Shown here piece by piece: positions 19,684 to 52,589 of a stretch of DNA of 64,000 bases (position 1 is its first letter; the number at the start of each line of letters is the position of its first letter). Made by a program: the position numbers and the translations under genes. The DNA is from Kudoa neothunni (Eukaryota; Animalia; Cnidaria), in contig OZ199840.1 in NCBI GenBank assembly GCA_964304625.1, forward strand, positions 6,823,252 to 6,887,251, read 5' to 3'. The notes beneath the pieces are model-generated. The model had not been told where the DNA came from. It made no database searches and worked only from the letters and a program-made list of their open reading frames with translations.

Positions 19684-20398
19684 AAAGTTCAAATTAATGG
19701 CTAAAAATTGCGTAGTCTTTGTATCCTCTTAGCCACCAATCAATCAATCAACGATAGGATTAGCTCGACAATCTTATACTGCCGTTTGATTTCACTTGCA
19801 TGTTTAATATTACGAATTTTAATATTAGAATCGTGATGAACGTATAAGTGATGATGTTTAAAAATAATGTTATATTTTTTATTCTGGCTTATTCAATCAA
19901 CATTTAATTTATTAAATATCTTTATTTTATACAACGTTTCTCAGGAGCTCGTATTCCCTCGATAGAATTGAAATTTCCTGAAGGGGATGTTTTAAAAGTG
20001 TTTGTCATAAATGTTAGATTATCAGCGTGACTATTAAACACATAGATCCTATGTGATTTAACCCTCGAAAGCTCAGTGGGCCCCTTTTTGGTCCAAGTAT
20101 AAATTGATCAAATAGAGTCACCTAATTATCGTAAAGTATTTTTTTATAGATTATTTAACTTTAAAGGATAAACAATATTTTTCATTCTAATTTCAGGAAT
20201 TTGTAAACTATAAATATTCTTGGAGAGTGATTTTTGTAATATTTAGTTACTCATCGAATCTTTTAATTCTTTATCATAAATTAAAATTGATTTGAAAGAA
20301 ACAAAGGTTAAAATGCAGAATAATGGCCGAATTTTCAGATTGTAGATTAAAATTAGTTCGAATATTAATCCTGTCTTTTGGATGGTGTCTATTAGCAC

Positions 20399-23300
20399 CC
20401 GCGTTGTCAGAATTGGTACGTTCGTACCAAAATGGTACTTTTTCATCGTCAAGACAAGATTTTTAATCCAGTCGATGATACTCTGTTTCCGGTTAGGTAA
20501 TAGTAATGAATATAAAGTAACATTAATGGCTTATTTAAAAATTTATACCTTTTACATTTATTTATTGTTATTCCAGTGTATAGATATAAATTATACGAAG
20601 ATATGCAAAATATGTCTTGCTGTTGAATCCGATGTTATTTTAAATATCCAACCTATCCCTTTAATGTTTTGTCTCATAAAGAAAACAAAACACAATTAAA
20701 TTTCAATATATTACCATTTGACAAAATTTTATAAAACTAAGCTTGTTCTTTCTTCACTTGTATGTAAAATGAGTTTCTGACCACTAAAATATTATCTATT
20801 TATTGCTATAAATGAAACGTCATTCGATTTCATGGTCAAATCAGTTCCACGTAATCCCAATGTATATTTAACCCTATACATGGGAAATTAGCTCATTTAC
20901 TTCACAAAATTAATTTTTCCGTCTACATGTTTTATACTTTAGGGTTTTAAATGTTTTTTTAACGAAAAAAAGTCTGGCTAAAAAGAGTTATCAAATTTAA
21001 TTATCGCTAAAAAAATTCCTTAAAATGTTAAGTTTATACATTTCTAATCAGAGGAATTGTTAATAAATTATATTTTTTAAAATTATAGCTATCACTGACA
21101 CCCGAAAATATTTAAATGATATGAAAACGAAGTGAAAGAGGAAAACAATATCCGGAATGTGATAAGGATAAAATTTTATACACAAACACTTATTTTAACG
21201 TACAAATTCATTCTTAATAACGCGCGTTTTAGTAATTTACTACAAAGTTTTTGTATTCAACAAGTCGAATTAATTTCTGTAACTTTTATTGTGTTATACA
21301 TACTGTAATATTTTGTGGGTTAGTAATTCTTGATGGCCTTTAATCAAAACGGTAGCGACTGCGAAAGCGATATAAGTAACACACTAAAAAAGAAAATATA
21401 TAAAGGTTACGAACGCAAGGTAAGAAGAGAATGGTTGGAAAATCGAAGATTTATCCAGTGGATTGATATGAGTAAGGATATCAAGGAGAAAGTGTTCTGT
21501 AAAATGTGTAAAAGTGAAGTTTCGGGGAGTATTTCACAAATCGAAAGACATGCAACAACTGAAAAGCATTTAAGAAATATGAGACAATCCACAAATAATA
21601 TGAAAATAGATGGTTATATAGAATTAAACAGTTCTGCTGTATATGATCGAAAAATAGCTAAAGCAGAATTGAAAGAATGTGTCTTTGTTACGGAACACAA
21701 TTTGCCGTTGTCATTCTTGGATCATTCGCCTGGTTTAGTTGCCAATGTTTGTGAAAATTCTGCTATTTGCAAAGATATTAAATGTGCTCGATCGAAAGGC
21801 AAATGTGTTTTTTGTCATGTTATTAGGAAATATTACTTAAAAAACTTAATTTTAAAATTACAGACAACCCAATTTTCATTAATAATAGACAAAACCACAG
21901 ATATGATATATCCACAACTAAACAACTAGTTTTAGTAGCTCGATATTATGATGACGATGTTAAAAAGACAATGAACAAATATTTGGTCATGTTGGAGATA
22001 ATGAATTGTACTGGCAAAAGAATTTTCGAATCATTAATAAATTTTTTTAAAACTAATATCTCCATTCACAATCTTATCGGATTCGCCAGTGACAATGCAA
22101 ATGTTATGATAGGTAACAAAAGTGGTGTCCAGCGTTTGCTGAAACAAATAATTCCTTCGCTTTACGTGCAAGGTTGCGTGTGCCACTCAGTAAATTTGTG
22201 CTTCAAGAGCTTGTGTCATCAACTTCCAAACAAGTTGGAAAGTTTAGCTATAAGTTTTTACACATATATTTCGAATAGCCCAAAACATTTGAGTGAATAC
22301 AAGGAATTTCAAAAGACAATGGATATTTGTCCTATAAAGGTATTACGCCCTTGTAGCATATGATGGTTGTCACTCGAACAATGGAATGCACTTAAAATGT
22401 TTTTCACTTCTGCAGTATCAGAAAATGATTTTGAATCAGCAAAATTAATAAATCATAAACTCAATAAACCAATCAATCATGTATTTTGAATTCTTAAACT
22501 TTATACTCCCCATAATGAATCAACTTAACCCTGAATTCCAATCAGAAACCTTTCGAATGCACAAGCAAAAAAATTCAATTAGTGTTACAGTAAAAGTTAT
22601 TCTCAGCTTATTTATGAAAAGAGAAATCATTAAAAATCTGGATATTTGGAATATTAATAACTCTTCAAATTATCTTCCATTAGATAATGTTTGTCGCGGA
22701 TCAAAAGTGACTTGCATCTATACAATGAATTCTTTCATAATAAATTCACAAGAATATCTCCAATATAAAATAAATACATTTAATTTCTATATTTCCTTAA
22801 TAAATAAAATATTTGATCCATTTTTATACAATAATTCATTTAAAGGACTTGAATTGTTTGAAGAAATGGATCCAAGTAACGTAAATGAAGGTAAGCCCAA
22901 GTCTATCATACCCCTTGCAGTAAGATTCCCCAATCTTATATTGGATGAATACTACACCAATGTGGATATTGAATGGAGACAATTAAATTTCGAAGACTCA
23001 ACTCTCTTTTCGATATGTGACCACGAAAAATTTTGGTACGATGTATCAGAAAAAAGAATTGGCAATGTTCCTAAATATCCATTAATTTCAAAACTAATGA
23101 TGAGCTTGCTTTCATTACCTCATTCTTCTGCTTGTGCCGAAAGAGTATTTTCCCAATTGAACATAATCAAAATGAAAAATGGACCATTATTGAATACCTA
23201 AACATTAAACAGCTTGATTTATTCGAAAAGTTAATTTTATAATACAGATTGTACAAAATAGAACCCGCCTAAAAAGTCAGTAGCAGCGTTCATAGAGGCA

Positions 23301-23464
23301 AAACTTTATGAAGATAACTGTAATGAAACAATTTCGTTTTAGATAGATTAAAAAACATTTTATATAACTACGTTTTTTCTCCTTAATCTCTTTTTTGTTC
23401 AGATTGACTGTTGGTACGTTTTACTTGATTTTGGTACTTTTTCGCTAATCCTCTGACAACCCTG
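20399..23464 (+). mobile_element. hAT (Tip/Ac-like) transposon with transposase pseudogene at 21330-23200
   Basis: TIRs ccgcgttgtcaga and tctgacaaccctg; TSD attagcac/atttgcat. BED-like FCKMC...HATTEKH, FSLIIDKTTD, GFASDNANVM, CVCHS and PHSSACAERVFSQ, broken by stops and frameshifts. Confidence 0.92.
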
Positions 23465-24841
23465 ATTTGCATTCCTTCGGTGTATGCGCGGAGGATTAAA
23501 GCATTACTCCTATACGTGCTTTTCTCTTAGATTAGTTGTTGAAAACCACTAATTGCCCAAAACAGTAAATAATATATTTCGAAAAATGAATAAAATGATA
23601 AAAATATTTTTTTTACTTTTTAATAATCAACAATTTTTTAATTGTTTTAGTCTTCCTTTTAATTTAATGGAACGAACATTGAAATTATACTAGTTTGAAT
23701 TTTTTTTATTTGGTCGATTTATGTAAAATGTAGTTTTATTCTCGTACTGATATTTTAAATTTTTTAGGCCCTTGCAAAATTCGTTGTGTTGACTACCACC
23801 AAATGTACTTAATTGATCCAATATTTCAGAACATAATTGTTTGTTGTTTTTAAACATTGATTTTAAGTGTGTATTGGTTGGTAAAACATTCAAGCCGATA
23901 TTTTGTGAATCAATGCCGGGGGAGTTTATAGTTGTTGAAATAGCGTCGTTTGTTATATTGCATATATGATTATAGCCGAGAAATATATCATAGTTTTTTT
24001 AAGATTACCTTCCAATGCATATAGAATCAAAAGTCAAAATTGAAGATTTTATCGTTGCGATGAAATATTTGAATGGGAGAGCGTATTGTTAAACAAATGT
24101 ACGATCACGCTTGTATATATAATCTTGAAATGTAACCAGTGCTGAACCAGATACAATGTGAACTAAGAAAATGTTTTTTAAATTCCAAATTGATAATAAT
24201 TTCAAATTTTGAGTCTCTAAGTTGATGGTATCGGCAACAAAAATGGACAAATGATTTATTATTGCCAAAATATCAATATCAACTTTGTTCTTCATGAGAA
24301 TCAGATCATCTTTTTATAAATCATCACGATGGATGGACTTACAGTAATTGAGTATTGAATTAACGATGATTTTGACATAAATTTTTTGATCTTGTCATGC
24401 TCTTGTTCAATCCTGTTATTTTTATTTGAACCAAATGTCGGAGCATCGAGACGATGAAAATGAACCCAAATATTTTGAATATTAATCCAGTTTTTTTCCA
24501 AATATTAAAAATACATTGGATTGGTCGAATATATTTCTTTCAAGATGAAGTAAAATGAGTCAGCATTTTCATTATATATTCACATGCGTTTTTCTTGTAA
24601 TTATTATTTAACCACTTTTTTATTTCTAATACGTGAAAGTTGGCGTAAAATTTTGTTACGGAGTAAATATGACTGTAATTTTTACGATATATAATTGACG
24701 TACGGTTTTAAAAGTCAATTAAAAAAATATTACCTGGCATTTTCAGCCGTTATTATTTATTTGAAATGACTAATATAAGAGTAAAAGCACGTATAGGAGT
24801 AATGCTTTAATCCTCCGCGCATACACCGAAGGAATGCAAAT

Positions 24842-25430
24842 CGGGGCCGCCAGGGCGTGGGGTTTTCCCCAAGATCTTGGGATTTTTATGGTCACCTTGG
24901 GTTCTTGGAGTTTTTTTCATTTTGTAAAAAATGAAAAAACTTCATTGAATAATAACACAAATTTTATTATGTGCGACATTAATATTTATATTTTTAATAA
25001 CGTATCCTATTCAGATTATATCGTGCAGGGTTTTAACATTTACGATATTGAACAACAATACAATAGATTGTTTAGCATGTCGCCATTACACAATTCTTCA
25101 GTTAACATTGTCGCATATTAGAAAATTTAACGTTATTTCAAAATATATCTTGAACTATGAATTAATTAATCCATTCATTCATTCATTCAACGTGAGCATA
25201 TTGATCTATATCAGACATTATGTTTAAGCGAGTGTTCGCGTCAATAAATTCCAATAATACGACGATAAATTTAAATTTAATATCTGTAGATGTAATTACA
25301 GACTCGGAAGATGACTAAAAACTGTAATGGATACGATTCTATTTTGTTGTATTTTAGACTTGCATTTTTCTCGACTTTTGATTTTTTATTTAAACTTGGG
25401 TTTTTTCTAAAACCCCCGCTGGCAAACCTG
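24842..25430. mobile_element. hAT MITE (same family as 57053-57628)
   Basis: TIRs cggggccgcca and tggcaaacctg, subterminal cccaag repeats, and full-length inverted similarity to 57053-57628. Confidence 0.88.
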
Positions 25431-25438
25431 GCGAAAAT

Positions 25439-27486
25439 TAGGGGTGGAAAATTCGTGAGTTTCGTTCGTGTTTGTTCACACGAACTAAATTTCAATTTAA
25501 AATTTTTCCGGCCTTAAGGATCTTCACTCTGAGGGAGTCTAAATATATGGATCGCTTAACCCTTGAAGGACCGGGCTCAAAAAACTTGCGCGTGTAACCA
25601 TGGGGGTACCCCAGAAGTTTTCTGCAAAAGCGATGGTATTTTCTCTTAATTCTTTAAATTTACAAATAAAATATTTAGGACTATTAAAAACGGTATCTGA
25701 ATAATCAAATTAATAAGTGAATCAATAGGAAATTTAATGAACATTTCAATAAGTGTTATAAATATAATCTCTTACAATCTATTTTATTGTTAAGTTATAA
25801 GATAGATACAAATACTTCAAATTCTTTTCGAATGGTAGAAGATAAAATAAATGCTTCCCGGTTATTCTTTTCGCAAATAATAACACAAACGGAGGTGAAT
25901 CTTGCGGGTTACGCACACGGTTGATCTCGGTAATCTCTATGTTGATTGGTGGATTATATTCGATCTTATTCACTGAACGGAATAAAAATGTATGTTATGG
26001 TCCAAGTTTTAATTAATGTTCCTTTTGGGGGTTTTCTCATTAAGTTATATTTCCTCAAAATTAGTTTATTCTTTTCTTCATTCAGTTACTTTTGCGCCAC
26101 ACTAATTAAATATTTAAAACTGAATCGAAATTGCATAATTTGATCCATTATGATAATGTTGCACATAGAAAGAAAATATGTAGGGGTGTTCAAGGACAAA
26201 TTGGAGCGTCATGTTTTAATAAGTGATAAACATTAATGAATGTTATCAAAACATCGAAAATATGATACCGCCTTCAATTATTTAGAATTAGCACGTTTTG
26301 GTAAGTATCAACGTGATTCCCTAAAACTATCCTTTGACATCTTCGAAATCCAATTATACAACATGAGGGAAATCAAAACTATAACGTTCTCCTTATATTT
26401 TTAATTTATTCGTGTCATTATAGTTACTTCACTGCTGTATAATAAAATAGCACTTGATATTACGCTTAAAAAATGATTTCTATGGCGAGTTAATTAACCG
26501 ACGGCCCGTTGAACACATTTTTAACCAGAATATATGCTGTTTCTTTTTAAAAAGTTAATATAAACAAAAGTTGAACAATTGTAAGACGTTACACGAACTT
26601 ATAAGTTAGAATTTAGAGTTTTGATAAGGAAAAACACAGATTTAAGAAAATTGAGGTCTCGAAAGACCCCGCATGGTCCGGGAGGGTTAAGGACGTGTTG
26701 GTTTTTAAAGACAATTAATTGGATGTTAACGAACTATATCTATATTTAATTCCAAAAATATATTGCATTTAAATTAAAGCTTATTTTTATTGGCTGAATA
26801 ACAATTTAAATTGGTCCAATAGCTATGTTAGCGGCTCTGTGTGAGAAATATGGTTTATGATATTTCCTAACTATCCCTGAAGCATTTGGGCGATTGCTAG
26901 ATCAAGGTTGGAGGATAATAACGTCGTTTTTAATTTTGATCGAAACGATTTTTTGATTAGTTTATCACGATATTGACATATTATTTTACCATTTTCGCCG
27001 TATATTCTCTAACGCGGTCTTAAGCAGACTGCATGAAAGAGTTCCACAACCAATAACTCAGGTGGTTACAGAAATTTTTTCAATTGTTAGAAAGATCGAT
27101 TGTGATGTGAAATTAAAAAGAATCAATAACTGTTTTATATTGCACATAACTATTAGTTGGATTTATTAACTTTATTGTTGGAATAGGCCGACACTTTCAG
27201 TAAGGTCAATGAGCTCATGCATTAACGATCCTTTTCGCGGATTTTTTCGCTATTAGAAAAAACCCTCTCGGATCTCGATTTGCAGATAGGTCTCGAAAAA
27301 ATAACTGTTACCAACTTTTTTAGATTTCGATATTTAGAATCTTCCAATAGTCTAAGATGGGGATGGTAAGTTCGTGCTCGCTCGCAAGTATCCAAACGTT
27401 CAAAAAGTACTAATGAACGAACGAGAACGAAATTACAGCTTTAAACTTTTTTGAACGAATGAACCCGGACGAAACTGCCATCCTTG
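25439..27486. mobile_element. hAT-like non-autonomous element containing a piggyBac remnant
   Basis: Termini taggggtggaaaattcgt and acgaaactgccatccttg with ttcgttcg/gaacgaac subterminal repeats. Flanked by gcgaaaat and ttgcaaat. Confidence 0.7.
25560..26686. mobile_element. piggyBac non-autonomous remnant
   Basis: TTAA-cccttgaaggacc ... ggtccgggaggg-TTAA, with internal ggggtacccc and gaggtctcgaaagacccc subterminal palindromes. Confidence 0.8.
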
Positions 27487-28919
27487 TTGCAAATGGACAC
27501 TATCTTTTTAAACCCAGATTAGCGTTATATTTATGTTATAATTTTTGCCAGGAATGACTTACTTTCATTCAATATATTATTTTTGATATTATGGTTATGC
27601 ATTCGCTACAATTGAACACCTAATGCTGGCATAAAATACGAATTCTTCTTTTCTTATAGTCATACATTTAACAATAGGCAATTGCTAAGGATGAAATATG
27701 ACAATCCAACAAAATTAAAATCGTCCTAAGTAAATTATACAACACCAAGCATGCTTTACCTGGCTAACTTAATTGGTGGTATAGCCCGTCGAAATAATCG
27801 CGAGGGGCTAGGAGTTCTCTGCATTAATAGATTACTGCAAATGCTATTGTGATGACAAATAGCGGTCGCTGAAAGTATCCCACTGATGGCGCAACACTGA
27901 TCCGTACTCATTATTAAAAGGTTCAACGGGTTCGTCTTTGTACGTTGTCGCTGATTTAGATTACGGCCACTATGATACATTTTTACCAAATATTCCCATC
28001 GCCAATCGACCAATGATAGGTCTCTAATCCCTCTTAATTTTTGCTGAATCAACAAAACATATTTTATGCTATCTTTTATACAACGATTGGTTATGTTTCC
28101 TTTAAGCAATTAGTTGTAAAGCTTTTATCTAATTCAGATTATGCTTATCTATAGTATAGGTCGTCAATTATTGGCAATACGAACCAACAGTGGGACACTC
28201 ACGATCACATTATCGTTTTACATAATTGAAAGCCATAACAATACAATTGAGGACACCTGTGATAATTGGTTCATTACCGTAACGAATTTCGTATTGTAAG
28301 CAATCTGGGATAATAAATCAACAGTGTTAATTCTTATAACATTGAATGAGCTGCGTAACAAGGGTGCGGATTTCATTGCCTCGCTCTCTTCCGAGTGTTT
28401 CCAAGGCAGCTGACCAGCGTAAACGGAGATCAATCATAAGGTATCTCTACATTTTTAAGCTTGATATGATATTTATGGTTTAAATCCTTAAAAGTTTATC
28501 CTCTTTATTATTATGTTTAGTTCTGCCGAATCGGGCTTCTTTAACGTAAAAGGTAATAATTCGTATACAAAATAAAAATCAGATTTATTTACGTACTAAT
28601 AACAATTAGCTAATTCGATAACAGACAACACTTAGTTGCGATATCCTCTGAATGGGCCAAAAATGTTTAAATTTTAAATAACAATTTAAAATCAAACGCT
28701 TTATTATGGCTTAAAGTTTTTCGTTAAAAGATGCCACTTGTAGGTACCAGAATGTGTAATGGTACAGACCAATCCAAAATGCTCTCACTCAAATCGGTAC
28801 CCAATAGTAGATTAATTAGGGACAGTCTTAAATGTAACTGATGAGATTTGTTGGAAAATTCCAATAAATATTGCCGTCACATTTCGCTATTAATATCATT
28901 AGATTCTGTGCGAGCTCAT

Positions 28920-43470: not shown

Positions 43471-46442
43471 ATACCGAATTTATCGCATTCACCACCGAGC
43501 GTGATATCTCACCTACTCATCCTTGGACAACAAATATATCATTTCCTAATGTCTCAAAATGCTTTGACGCTATCATAGACACCGGATCCGCCTATACAAT
43601 AGTAAATTCTTCGATTGTACCGCCAAATTGCCCATGCAAACCTACACCTATGCATCTATACACCGCTTCGGGAACCCCAATCAAAATTAGTTCATTAGTT
43701 ACCAAAACTCTTATATACGATGCTATAATTGGCCGTGATTTCCTAAAATGCGTTGATTCGAATGGTATTTTTATTGAAATTGCTGATGCATCTGTTTCAA
43801 ACGTCAACGTTACAAACTCAAGACACAATGGTAAATACCAAAAGATTGTTAATGATATCTTCAAAGAATTCAAAAGCGTATTTGCGAATGATATAAATGA
43901 TCTACAAACTGCTAAAACAATATATCATTCAATTGATACTGACGAAGCAAAACCTGTAGTTACAAAACAAATAGAGGCTGCTCTGCTGAATAATATAATT
44001 AGACCCTCAAGTAGTCCGTGGTGTTCTCCAGTAGTTATGGTTCCCAAAAAGGATGGCAACATTAGAATGTGTGTTGACTATCGGAAACTTAACAGCATAA
44101 CCCGCAGAGATGAATATCCTCTCCCTAGATTAGAAGATACGCTAGATATTATGGCCGGATCTACTGTGTTTACCACGCTCGATCTTCAATGCGGCTACTG
44201 GCAAATACCCTTGAAAGAAGAAGATATCCCTAAAACGGCATTTTCTCCGGGAAATGGTCATGGTCTCTATGAGTTTGTGAAAATGCCATTTGGATTGTCT
44301 AATGCACCTGCTACATTCCAACGTGGAATGGATAAGCTCTTTGAAAATATTCCGAACGCAATGGCCTACCTAGATGATATTATTATATTTTCAAAAAATG
44401 AAGTAGAACATACCAAACACGTCCAAAATGTACTCAGTGTTTTGGAACGAGAAAATTTACGCATCAATTTTTCTAAAAGTGTTTTCTATCAGGAAGAATT
44501 AAAGTATTTGGGCTTCATTATCTCCAAAAATGGGATAAGATGTGATCCGAGCAAGATAGAGGCAATAGCGAACTGGAAAACTCCTACGAATAGAGATGAA
44601 TTGAAAAGTTTCCTTAGAACTGTCAACTTTTTGCACAAACACTTAGAGAATCTTGCCGACGTTACCGCCCCATTAACTCAACTGCTTGAAGGTTCATCAA
44701 AATTCCAGTGGGATGATAAATGCCATAATCACTTTTTACGAACCAAGAAGCTAGTTCAAGATTCGCCCATGCTACATTTTCCTGATTTAAATATTGATTT
44801 CTGTATCGAGACCGACGCATCAAATACTGCGAGTGGAGCGATTTTGTTCCAAGAAACCAAAAATAATGTGATAGCCTACACTAGTCGAAAATTTACCAAA
44901 CCTGAACAGAGATATGCAACTATAGATAAAGAAGCTTTGGCTATCATCCACGCAGTTCGAAAGTTTAGACCATACCTACTTGGTCGCCGCTTTACAATAT
45001 TCACCGATCATAACCCCTTGGTATATTTAAAAACAATAAGGGATCCTCGCGGTCGCAGAGCGCGTTGGATGTTAGAGTTAGAGGAATACGAATTTGAAGT
45101 TAAGTATATTCCTGGATCTAAAAACCATTATGCAGACTCTCTTTCGAGGAGTTGCGCGACGATAATGCCAAACATCAATTCTGATGAGCTCAAAGAGGAA
45201 CAATCAAAGGATCCAACTATTTCAACAGTGAAAATAGCCATAGAAGAATCTGATCCAACAAATTTGAATACTATTACCGCTTTGGAGCTTTGGCAAAGGA
45301 AATCTAAACTTGAAATTATCAATGGAATATTATTTCATAAATCTAGAAGTGGGAAATTACCTGTAATCCCAAAATCACTACAGCTACAGCATCGCATGCT
45401 AGAATGTATCCATGGTGAATCAGCTCATTCCGGTGTCAACAAGACACTTAACAGATTGAGAAAAACATGCTATTGGACGAAAATGGATACTGATTGTGTG
45501 AAATATGTTTCACAATGCGAAACATGTAAGAGAGTTAAAGGCGAAAAAACCAAACCGAAAGCACCGCTGGCTCCTATACCTGTTAACTCCCAAGCTTTTA
45601 TGTGGCACGCTGACTTTATGGGTCCTCTGGAAAGCACTAAGAGAGGGAACCGATACATATTATTGTTTGTGGACCAATTTAGCAAATGGGTCGAAGCTTG
45701 TCCCCTGCGTGTTATTGACGCAAAGTCAACAGCCGACGCATTGATTTCCTTGATTATTTCAAGACATGGTGTTCCTCATCGTATCCACACTGACCAAGGT
45801 TGTCAGTTCGAATCTTGTCTCTTCAACGACGTCTGCACCTCACTTGGAATCAACCATAGTCATCCCACCGTTTACCATCCGGAAGGGACTGGTATGACCG
45901 AAAGGCAGGTTAGAAATTTAAAAACAAAACTTAAGGCGTTAGTTCACGAAGAGAAAAAAGATTGGGATGAACTTCTTGATTATGCCCTATTCGCCATCAG
46001 GATCACTACGTCGGCAACTACAAATTATACACCTACAGCCTTATTATACGGAAGAGAGCTCCGGTCTCCCAGCCAAAATATTTTAGAACTGAATCAATCT
46101 ACGAACTCTAACTATCATATATACGCCGATGATATTAAAAGACGGTTAAAATCTTATACAAAAGCAGCTTCCGAGAACACAAAAATATCCCAACAAAAGC
46201 AATCCCTATATTACAATAGAAACTGCACCAAAAGTTTTCATAACATAGGAGAGTTCGTTTTAGTGAAAAACCGAAAGCCAACAGCACCTTCACCTAAATA
46301 TGAAGGCCCCTACCAAATAATGGAAAGGCGCGAATATGTCTACTCCCTCCAAAAACATAATGGAAAAATTCTCAAAGTACATTTTAATGACATTATTAGA
46401 ACATCAAAACCTTTCAACGCCGCACATACTGATAAACTATGA
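43416..46442 (+). CDS. pol: pol polyprotein (protease, RT, RNase H, integrase) in the -1 frame relative to gag
   Basis: AIIDTGSA (upstream of the listed ATG), IIGRDFL, RMCVDYRKLN, MPFGLSNAPATFQ, YLDD, ETDAS, FTDHNPL, HHCC zinc finger, HADF..HTDQG..E and GPY. Confidence 0.95.
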   Translation, partial: GKRAKGSSPAWGTSPKPLNTEFIAFTTERDISPTHPWTTNISFPNVSKCFDAIIDTGSAYTIVNSSIVPPNCPCKPTPMHLYTASGTPIKISSLVTKTLIYDAIIGRDFLKCVDSNGIFIEIADASVSNVNVTNSRHNGKYQKIVNDIFKEFKSVFANDINDLQTAKTIYHSIDTDEAKPVVTKQIEAALLNNIIRPSSSPWCSPVVMVPKKDGNIRMCVDYRKLNSITRRDEYPLPRLEDTLDIMAGSTVFTTLDLQCGYWQIPLKEEDIPKTAFSPGNGHGLYEFVKMPFGLSNAPATFQRGMDKLFENIPNAMAYLDDIIIFSKNEVEHTKHVQNVLSVLERENLRINFSKSVFYQEELKYLGFIISKNGIRCDPSKIEAIANWKTPTNRDELKSFLRTVNFLHKHLENLADVTAPLTQLLEGSSKFQWDDKCHNHFLRTKKLVQDSPMLHFPDLNIDFCIETDASNTASGAILFQETKNNVIAYTSRKFTKPEQRYATIDKEALAIIHAVRKFRPYLLGRRFTIFTDHNPLVYLKTIRDPRGRRARWMLELEEYEFEVKYIPGSKNHYADSLSRSCATIMPNINSDELKEEQSKDPTISTVKIAIEESDPTNLNTITALELWQRKSKLEIINGILFHKSRSGKLPVIPKSLQLQHRMLECIHGESAHSGVNKTLNRLRKTCYWTKMDTDCVKYVSQCETCKRVKGEKTKPKAPLAPIPVNSQAFMWHADFMGPLESTKRGNRYILLFVDQFSKWVEACPLRVIDAKSTADALISLIISRHGVPHRIHTDQGCQFESCLFNDVCTSLGINHSHPTVYHPEGTGMTERQVRNLKTKLKALVHEEKKDWDELLDYALFAIRITTSATTNYTPTALLYGRELRSPSQNILELNQSTNSNYHIYADDIKRRLKSYTKAASENTKISQQKQSLYYNRNCTKSFHNIGEFVLVKNRKPTAPSPKYEGPYQIMERREYVYSLQKHNGKILKVHFNDIIRTSKPFNAAHTDKL

Positions 46443-50930: not shown

Positions 50931-52589
50931 CCACCCAAGTGTCTTTCGGTTTTATGTGGCTCTAGACGACTTTCAAACGTATTTTTAACCAAGTTATACT
51001 TTATTGTTTTTAAAACTTCAACTATTGTCCTAAAACTTAATTTCCCTTATAAATTAAAAGTAATAAAGGAAATATAATCATAAATAAGTCTTTTACACAA
51101 AAAACGCGGTTAAAATTTATAAGTTCCTTATTATCGAAGAAACTCGTATGGACGCATTCGGCAATTTTCGAACAATGCCAACTAATATTTAGACGCCGAA
51201 AATCTATAGAACCACGTTATTTAAAATATGTTACAGTCAGATATCGATACTCTATAGCCCCATATTGCGTAATTTAATGTCCATTTTCACTTTATCATTA
51301 ATTTATTCATTTAAGTGGGCCATTCGTTCGTTATTATCCAAAGATATCTAAAATATATTTTTTAATGCAATTATTATTAATTAGGGGTAAAAATTTATCA
51401 TAATGGCCGTAATCTAAATCAGCGACAACGTACAAAACCGAACCCGTTGAATATTTTAATAATGAGTATTGATCAGTGTTGCATCGTCAGTAGGATACTT
51501 TCAGCAACCGCTATTTGTCATCACAATAGCATTTGCAGTAATCTATTAATGCAGAGACCTCCTAGCGTCTCGCGATTATTTCGACAGGCTGTATCACCAA
51601 TTAAGTTGGCCAAGTAAAGCATGCTCTGTGTTGCAGAATCTATGTCGGACAACTCTAATTTTGTTGGATTATCATATTTCACCCTTAGCAATTGCCTATT
51701 GTTAAATCTGACTATAAGAAAAAAGAATTCGTATTTTATGCAAGCATTAGGTGTTCAATTGTAGCAAATTCATAACCATAATATCAAAAATAATATATTG
51801 AATGAAGATAAGTCATTCCTAACAAAACTTATAGTACAGTCAAACCTCGATTATCCGGAAAATTTGGGACCGACGATTTTCTTTCCGGATTGCGAGGTTC
51901 CGGTTAATCGAACATAAACAATGTCTTGTGCGCGCGCGATTTTCCAACATTTCTGCTTAAAAGATTCTTTACATGATTATTATGCAATTTCTTACTACTT
52001 ATTAATTAGAATATTTTAACATCTGTCATTTAAATTAAAAATGTTGACATATCTATTAACTATGAATATGGAGACAAGGGAAAAACAGTACATAATTATG
52101 ATAGTTTTTACACTTCTACAGAGGAGTAATCTGTTTTTTTAAATAATCGGTAATTAATGTATGTTTAATGTACATAAAGGCCTACATTCAGATATAACAC
52201 AAATTTATATAAGAACTGGATGTTTAATATAAGTTTTAAAAGAAAAATCTGTTAATAAATAATCTAGAAATATGTTTTTTTTGAATATTTCATTGGTATA
52301 TATGCTACATTTTATTTGTAATACGGTGATGAGTTATACTTTTATCCAGAAATATGATTAAATAGTTTTTCCGGTTTCCGGATAATCGAGGTTCGACTGT
52401 ATAAATATAATGCTAATCTGGGTTTAAAAATACAGGATTAATATTCGAACTAATTATAATCTATAATCTGAAAATTCGGTCGCTACTCTGAATTTTAACC
52501 GATCCAGCTAATTTAACGTTTTAAGTGAGCAGTGAATTTAAGTGAAAGATGGCTTGAGGTCCATTTGGACCCCAAAAATGCTTGGAGGA
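50931..52589. mobile_element. piggyBac-like non-autonomous element
   Basis: TTAA-ccacccaagtg ... tgcttggagga-TTAA with a gaggtccatttggacccc subterminal palindrome. Paralog at 20062-28100. Confidence 0.7.
51837..52399. mobile_element. Tc1/mariner (pogo/Tigger-like) MITE
   Basis: 25-bp TIRs cagtc(a/g)aacctcgattatccggaaa with TA on both sides. Absent from the paralogous site near 27530. Confidence 0.92.

Follow-up and report, generated by a model that had tools for sequence, protein, structure and literature searches.

Insertions of five hAT families at one position in the terminal inverted repeats of a putative Mutator-like element family in Kudoa neothunni

The hAT transposons Hermes, Tol2, TcBuster, and Ac are considered to integrate nearly at random and hence serve as gene-transfer tools. 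Reportedly, in the literature of the late 1990s, hobo and Hermes shared integration hot spots on target plasmids that depended on the flanking sequence. The MITEs (miniature inverted-repeat transposable elements) of maize and rice form nested insertions and show a preference for self-insertion, and the bacterial elements IS30 and IS1397 target inverted repeats or REP elements. Site-specific insertion is found in few transposable elements (TEs); Pokey, a piggyBac element that inserts at one site in the 28S ribosomal DNA (rDNA) of Daphnia, is the only rDNA-specific DNA transposon described (PMC3849761). Here we analyze a stretch of 64,000 nucleotides (nt) from the cnidarian Kudoa neothunni (contig OZ199840.1, positions 6,823,252 to 6,887,251), called the window below. 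It contains what appears to be a non-autonomous Mutator-like element (MULE) with insertions in both of its terminal inverted repeats (TIRs). All three insertions are of the hAT type and lie at the same octamer, nt 11 to 18 of the TIR (consensus ATTTGCAC, more generally nTTTnCAC), a position that five hAT families have used across the genome.

A first-pass annotation of the window had described three hATs at one octamer in both MULE TIRs, and all of its junctions held. It put the octamer 11 bp inside the terminus; the distance is 10 bp, the consensus terminus being GATRGYGTCT. It named the middle target-site duplication (TSD) as its weakest link, and that copy does match at only 5 of 8 positions, but the junction is spanned by short-read contigs of public runs. 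The third insert, given as one hAT-like element at 25439-27486, is of the hAT type but is not a single element: a MITE of about 913 bp surrounds a 1.13-kb element that looks piggyBac-like. The empty MULE site that it reported near 52420-52440 is real and inverted but belongs to a paralogous repeat copy. The features are as follows, with strand where one applies.

20371-20379: left copy of the MULE TSD, CTGTCTTTT, matching 27500-27508 at 8 of 9 positions
20380-27504: putative non-autonomous MULE host, subfamily A, both TIRs split by hAT inserts
20381-20390, plus strand: outermost 10 bp of the left TIR of the MULE, GATGGTGTCT, severed from the remaining TIR; family consensus terminus GATRGYGTCT
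20391-20398: hAT TSD copy 1, ATTAGCAC (consensus ATTTGCAC), 7 of 8 versus the family octamer
20399-23464, plus strand: F1, an autonomous-derived hAT with broken open reading frames (ORFs), CCGCGTTGTCAGA...TCTGACAACCCTG; termini are those of family F1
23465-23472: hAT TSD copy 2, ATTTGCAT, followed by the inner TIR
23473-24833, plus strand: MULE body, inner TIRs and a 1.2-kb non-coding interior; at least 34 genomic copies of 70 to 86% identity
24834-24841: hAT TSD in the right TIR, inner side, ATGCAAAT (reverse complement of ATTTGCAT)
24842-25430, plus strand: F2, a 589-bp hAT-type MITE with at least 222 candidate copies
25431-25438: degenerate TSD common to F2 and F5, GCGAAAAT, 5 of 8
25439-27486, plus strand: F5, a hAT-type MITE of about 913 bp minus its nested insert
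25560-26686: nested piggyBac-like element in F5, with TTAA at 25556-25559 and 26687-26690
27487-27494: hAT TSD in the right TIR, outer side, TTGCAAAT
27495-27504, minus strand: outermost 10 bp of the right TIR of the MULE, GGACACTATC (reverse complement GATAGTGTCC), 9 of 10 versus the family terminus GATAGTGTCT
27500-27508: right copy of the MULE TSD, CTATCTTTT, paired with 20371-20379
52400-52480, minus strand (inverted): paralogous unfilled MULE site, flanks rejoined around CTGTATTTTT

The genome-wide censuses are samples: they consist of pattern matches with at most 2 to 3 mismatches, and counts are among the matches listed. We inspected 10 kb outward of each interrupted subfamily-A end. 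Almost every one read GATRGYGTCT-ATTTGCAC-[CAGGG...CCCTG]-ATTTGCAC-TCCC..., often with a perfect TSD, and the full signature of a hAT in a TIR was present at 12 loci besides the window, several of them with perfect TSDs. The inserts ranged from 503 to 3340 bp. Among unique subfamily-A ends, 14 of 47 were occupied at the exact base pair, mostly with clean TSDs. With up to 2 mismatches allowed, the outer 18-mer GATRGYGTCTATTTGCAC had 114 genomic matches, versus 3 for a reversed control. When 98 outer termini were listed with 16 downstream bases, 33 led into a hAT end and 62 into a MULE TIR of subfamily A, B, or C; 3 were unclear. The 33 occupied termini were divided roughly into 9 F1, 11 F2, 10 F3, 2 F4, and 1 other, and three pairs among them were segmental duplicates. 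About one-third of the termini of this MULE group are occupied, by at least 30 separate hAT insertion events.

Uninterrupted subfamily-A ends read N-GAT(G/A)G(T/C)GTCT-ATTTGCA(C/T)-TCCCTCGGTGCATGCGCGGAGG. Because they start with GAT, the MULE terminus is GAT... and the octamer is TIR nt 11 to 18; position 20380, a G, lies outside the terminus, as flank or filler. Intact MULE copies do begin with the terminus followed by the octamer. The tabulation that the first-pass annotation had proposed, of what adjoins ATTTGCAT in other copies, gives occupants from F1 to F5, mostly with clean 8-bp TSDs. The annotation had inferred either targeting of, or preferential retention at, this site. The fractions given above (14/47 and 33/98) favor targeting; retention alone cannot account for base-pair precision.

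Families F1, F2, and F5 occupy the site in the window, and F3 and F4 occupy it elsewhere. All five have the marks of hATs. Their 8-bp TSDs are perfect or match at 7 of 8 positions at the 12 other MULE loci and are also found at non-MULE loci; in the window the matches are 6/8 for F1 and 5/8 for F2 and F5. Their short TIRs are of the form (C/T)A(G/A)NG: CAGGGTTGCCAG in F1, CAGGGCGTCCAC and CAGGGCTGCCAG in F2, CAGGGCGTCCAA in F3, CAGGCACGTGCC in F4, and CAGGGATGGCAA in F5. F2, F3, and F5 are non-coding MITEs. In F1, the ORF at 22479-23198 encodes the hAT dimerization domain (PF05699, E 1e-6, above the Pfam cut-off) and has a weak match to the C-terminus of the Hermes transposase; it is without DUF4371. 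F4 has a DUF4371 plus hAT-dimerization architecture (PF05699, E 1e-9), which we take to be that of Buster/Charlie-type hATs. The label non-Buster, applied to these hATs in the first-pass annotation, holds at best for the window elements and may not extend to F4 at the same site. The Ac/hobo/Hermes group has a weak nTnnnnAn target, and the Buster group has a central TA. Among 25 non-MULE F2 sites, 9 had T at position 2 and 13 had A at position 7, with no central TA. The subterminal repeats are GGTAC in F1, CTTGGG in F2 and F3, and TTCGTTCG in F5; by eye, we found no subterminal motif common to the hATs and the MULE TIR that could act as a BED-finger homing signal.

Each family had a substantial share of its sampled ends at the MULE site:

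F1: 6 of 33 sampled ends
F2: 5 of 30 sampled ends
F3: 5 of 61 sampled ends
F4: 4 of 19 sampled ends
F5: 1 of 9 sampled ends

These shares, 8 to 21% per family, correspond to an enrichment of about 4 x 10^4-fold over random, given at most 150 such positions in a 40-Mb genome. The probability that 21 of 152 sampled hAT ends would fall on at most 150 genomic positions is about 3e-89, which excludes chance. The other 79 to 92% of copies are elsewhere, with unrelated TSDs that have only a weak tendency to T at position 2 and A at position 7. Since most copies are elsewhere, the site counts as a hot spot that the families use without being confined to it; obligate specificity like that of Pokey or Dada, with nearly all copies in the target, was not seen among the sampled ends, of which only 8 to 21% were at the site. 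Outside MULEs, F4 ends are often in (TG)n-like DNA: 6 of 15 TSDs were of the type GTGTGTGG or GTGTGTAT (for example, at C1:11194539, C3:5323124, and C1:16273545), and a handful of the F2 and F3 sites resemble these. The pattern may reflect a preference for flexible DNA.

About 1,500 ATTTGCAC octamers are expected genome-wide, versus about 100 in MULE ends. Among the sampled ends, 15 to 17 had ATTTGCAC-like TSDs, all in MULE context; no sampled hAT end had a ATTTGCAC TSD outside it. In subfamily-A DNA totaling about 52 kb, the hAT insertions were all at this one site. Seven insertions into the interior of subfamily-A elements were from other TIR families, with TSDs of about 9 bp at scattered positions, and none was a hAT. 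These internal inserts are in L001, L002, L011, L016, L023, L024, and L026; examples of their tips are GGTATGGAGAATTTTTGCCGG... and GGTAATGGTATAGT.... What is targeted is the TIR context, as opposed to the octamer by itself or to MULE DNA at large.

The host is represented by at least 34 copies of its interior (23465-24841) in the 40.26-Mb, 4-contig assembly. A census with an inner-TIR pattern gave 37 ends, nearly all of them within these copies, and the consensus terminus is present in 98 to 114 genomic copies. The inner TIR arms of the window element are 71 nt long and 94% complementary; in other subfamily-A copies the TIR self-matches are 72 to 123 nt. Perfect 9-bp MULE TSDs flank L003, L011, L021, L023, and L081, and TSDs matching at 8 of 9 positions flank L001, L019, and the window copy. 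Transposase evidence comes from a sister subfamily: the 2.5-kb subfamily-B element L069, with ends GATAGTGACT-ATTTGCAC, has an ORF of about 610 codons in four broken pieces. It has matches to the ZSWIM1-3 RNaseH-like and ZSWIM3_N domains, both just below their cut-offs, and, by eye, a SWIM-like CxC...CxH motif. The long TIRs and the TSD length, which is 9 to 11 bp in Mutator-like elements, agree with such an assignment, and we classify the host in the window as a non-autonomous MULE, for which the transposase evidence is suggestive.

The censuses show the site to be a genome-wide hot spot; to the reading that hATs are captured there through the local DNA context of the TIR we give a probability of about 0.55. 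The hAT transposition complex would capture this stretch of MULE TIR far more efficiently than other DNA. The relevant context would be the outer decamer plus the octamer, perhaps with the conserved GTGCATGCGCGGAGGATTAAAG block 8 to 10 bp further in, and its sequence or shape would be unusually easy to bind and bend, with the staggered 8-bp cut falling at one fixed position. For Hermes, nTnnnnAn is the preferred target, and a single dimer spans the 8 bp on integration (PMC10368747). That the TIR DNA is recognized directly, by its sequence or shape, is a mechanism that we infer, and we consider the chances about even. We favor it because distantly related hATs (F1 without DUF4371 and F4 with it) use the same site, because orientation is free (F2 and F3 are in both orientations at the MULE site in roughly equal numbers), and because sites beside a resident hAT are still used.

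Several points weigh against this reading, beginning with the sampled nature of the censuses and the inferred manner of recognition. The flanks of the MULE site are non-palindromic, unlike a simple dimer-symmetric target, and subfamilies A and B are both hit even though they differ in the 8 to 9 bp immediately inward of the octamer. Subfamily C, with the octamer CTTTCCAC, is hit more rarely (1/16 versus 32/79; Fisher P = 0.009), a difference that could reflect sequence or age. The MULE domain match of L069 (PF10551) scores 26.5 bits versus the curated cut-off of 27.6, which we attribute to its broken ORF. An enrichment of 10^4- to 10^5-fold exceeds that of any hAT hot spot known to us and may point to a protein partner.

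Such a partner could be a TIR-bound MULE transposase or a host repressor that bends the DNA or contacts hAT transposases, so that integration is placed at the edge of the protein-bound region, much as Ty3 inserts beside TFIIIB and Tf1 beside Sap1. We regard protein guidance as less probable than direct recognition, but as a competitor to be taken seriously. It would account for the base-pair precision and for the size of the enrichment, and use of the site by hATs as distant as F1 and F4 fits it as well. So does the presence of GTGCATGCGCGGAGGATTAAAG 8 to 10 bp inside the site in all three subfamilies, and the recurrence of F3 at a fixed position in an unrelated Tc1/mariner-like TIR (described below) fits it better than it fits a single DNA word. 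However, double insertions and footprints lie beside a hAT already in place, which displaces half of the context; no orientation bias was seen at the MULE site; no intact MULE transposase gene was seen, that of L069 being broken; and amplification of a composite may explain the Tc1-like case.

A wider version of this idea, which we hold only tentatively, is that hATs are actively steered to the TIRs of other DNA transposons by a protein or DNA structure that marks transposon ends. It would take in the MULE site and possibly the second fixed site, in the Tc1/mariner-like TIR. If true, this would be transposon-on-transposon homing, in which hATs are provided with safe landing pads within a compact genome while rival elements are crippled.

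At this second position, F3 MITEs recur some 61 bp into a Tc1/mariner-like repeat's TIR, TACAGTAAGAAACCAATTTCATGTAATCCCCTCGGGACC...AAATCG|GTCACGTC|, and in a sister subfamily, ...TATTAAAC|GTTGCAAC|. The loci are L082-L098 (for example, C3:6889084-6890250, C1:12553634-12554800, and C1:6466016-6467180). At least 16 of 63 sampled F3 ends were at this site, with clean 8-bp TSDs and an orientation bias of about 11 to 2-3. Given this bias, and a tree without resolution, the case may be the amplification of one composite.

For the MULE site itself, we consider it very improbable that one or a few MULE/hAT composites had spread through MULE transposition, segmental duplication, or gene conversion. Some occupied ends are duplicates: L012/L013, C2:4797095/4828416, and C2:6586402/10331699. 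In addition, C3:6798782-6798816, which lies about 24 kb ahead of the window, is a paralog, in inverted orientation, of the left MULE/F1 junction of the window. It has the same odd CCGCG hAT tip and ATTAGCAC TSD variants, which points to a segmental duplication that includes the MULE/hAT composite. After removal of duplicates, however, at least 30 occupied ends were left, with five hAT families, both orientations (as scored for F1, F2, and F3), and inserts that differ in size. MULE subfamilies A, B, and C were all hit, and the host loci differ and have their own 9-bp TSDs. At the left ends of L002 and the window element, F1 is in opposite orientations. In a maximum-likelihood tree of 27 F2 copies, the 5 in-MULE copies were scattered among the non-MULE copies (5 changes for 5 rows), and so represent independent events. 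Terminal branches of 0.02 to 0.12 indicate that all copies are old. On the diversity of families, orientations, sizes, and loci, and on the F2 tree, the spread of one composite is rejected and largely refuted.

Likewise very improbable is a preference for, or retention at, the octamer alone, with MULEs as the main carriers of ATTTGCAC: although ATTTGCAC fits nTnnnnAn and subfamily C, with its different octamer, is hit less often, the CTTTCCAC sites of that subfamily were hit at least 4 times in all censuses together, retention cannot pick out one base pair inside neutral TE DNA, and both ideas are rejected on the sampled TSDs and on the internal insertions of subfamily A. Misassembly is ruled out, as more than 30 loci have this architecture and the F2/F5 junction is spanned by contigs of public runs. 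We also considered whether the MULE end resembles a hAT end. The MULE decamer GATGGCGTCT matches the F2/F3 terminus CAGGGCGTCC at 7 of 10 positions (11 of 18 over 18 nt with F3), but F1 matches at only 5 of 10 and F4 and F5 at about 3 of 10, and we treat the resemblance as probably due to chance.

The outer limits of the window MULE were examined through the empty site. Within 52400-52480 the flanks rejoin at about 52424-52434, and a contig of run X2 has GTTCGAATATTAATC immediately 5' of position 27500. The spacing from TTAATC to AAACCC is 10 nt both in the 52.4-kb copy and in the X2 contig, which implies a putative 9/10-bp MULE TSD, CT(G/A)TCTTTT, at 20371-20379 and 27500-27508. Because the first five bases of this TSD are also the last five of the right TIR (CTATC), the right MULE boundary is 27499 or 27504, an ambiguity of 5 nt. 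The left flank, 20180-20305, is the 126-bp TIR of a MITE family of about 790 bp with at least 107 candidate copies, and thus the MULE is itself nested in repeat-rich DNA. Elsewhere this TIR is found in inverted pairs about 670 bp apart. Since the flank belongs to a repeat family, the 52.4-kb copy and the X2 contig are paralogous repeat copies, and neither proves a presence/absence polymorphism. In the raw-read whole-genome sequencing runs X7 and X8, which have the same species label, no read fell on the stretch in about 1.9 Gb sampled from each; another organism, or a distant strain, may have been filed under that label.

Family termini for the window inserts are CAGGGTTGCCAGAATTGGTACG and CAGGGTTGYCAGARGATTAGCG (F1), CAGGGCGTCCACTGCTTGGG and CAGGGCTGCCAGCGGG (F2, with 8-bp TSDs also at non-MULE sites), and CAGGGATGGCAAATTCGTG and CAGGGATGGCAAATTCGTGAGTTTCGTTCGTG (F5). 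As a query, the F5 interval splits into positions 1-117 and 1249-2048, which are F5 proper, and 118-1252, which is another repeat. The latter has tips CCCTTGAAGG...CCGGGAGGG (CCCT...AGGG) and at least 20 copies genome-wide; its termini and TSD make it look piggyBac-like. Elsewhere in the window, at 43650-46442, there is a Ty3/gypsy element whose 930-amino-acid ORF has reverse transcriptase, RNase H, and integrase domains.

Some ends were hit twice. At the right end of the window element, two hATs have a decayed middle TSD in common, and at C1:5394730 another hAT end (...CCTG) is followed by ATTTTCAC and then by F4. Other ends have palindromic inner junctions formed by inverted copies of the flank: ATTTGCAA-TGCAAAT-TTTGCAT in L045 (C2:317800-327799) and GTGCAAA-C-TTTGCAC in L043 (C1:5546910-5556909). 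Excision of hATs via flank hairpins leaves palindromic nucleotides, and these junctions look like footprints of excision or aborted excision. In L081 (C1:17107600-17109190), a perfect 9-bp MULE TSD, GATAATTAT, surrounds GATGGCGTCT-ATTTGCAC-[F1, 1357 bp]-GTGCAAAT-AGACACTATC, and L080 (C1:2013900-2014990) has the same inverted capping by octamer and decamer around F3. Both are probably products of recombination between same-family hATs in the two TIRs, with deletion of the MULE interior. A genome search for TCTATTTGCA-N(0-30)-TGCAAATAGA, the pattern of a mini-MULE or excision product, gave no match.

Unrelated hAT families find one 8-bp position 10^4 to 10^5 times more often than expected by chance, and a short DNA context of about 20 to 40 bp could show how target capture by hATs becomes specific. 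With its outer 10 bp severed from the transposase-binding TIR, the MULE is probably immobilized, and the hATs are offered a place to land without harm in a compact 40-Mb genome. Recombination between same-family hATs in the two TIRs can remove the interior of the MULE, so that a hAT with MULE tips on either side is left. The interaction of transposon families would thus provide a haven for one superfamily, inactivation of the other, and new composite elements.

A full-text literature search of a limited collection gave no description of hAT insertion into MULE TIRs. Among the systems compared here, most of which we draw from general knowledge, none is a natural hot spot for several hAT families inside the TIR of another superfamily. 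The nested MITEs of cereals are similar in that DNA transposons lie within DNA transposons above expectation, but they use short words (TA, TAA) that are common in AT-rich MITEs, whereas here a single position is used and the octamer is insufficient. With IS30 and IS1397 this site has in common integration at fixed positions in the terminal repeats of mobile or repeated elements; those elements are prokaryotic, with unrelated transposase families, and IS30 targets its own ends, whereas here the ends are those of a foreign superfamily. Like Pokey, the hATs are cut-and-paste DNA transposons that repeatedly use one site in a multicopy, harmless target. The target of Pokey is rDNA, however, and here it is another transposon's TIR, entered by hATs with 8-bp TSDs; moreover, several families use the one site, and only 8 to 21% of their copies are there. 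The hot spots of hobo and Hermes resemble this site in that different hAT transposases use the same 8-bp site and sequence outside the TSD matters. Those hot spots were modest and were on artificial plasmids, whereas the site described here is a natural genomic one, enriched about 4 x 10^4-fold, that sits in a mobile element and has been used over long evolutionary time.

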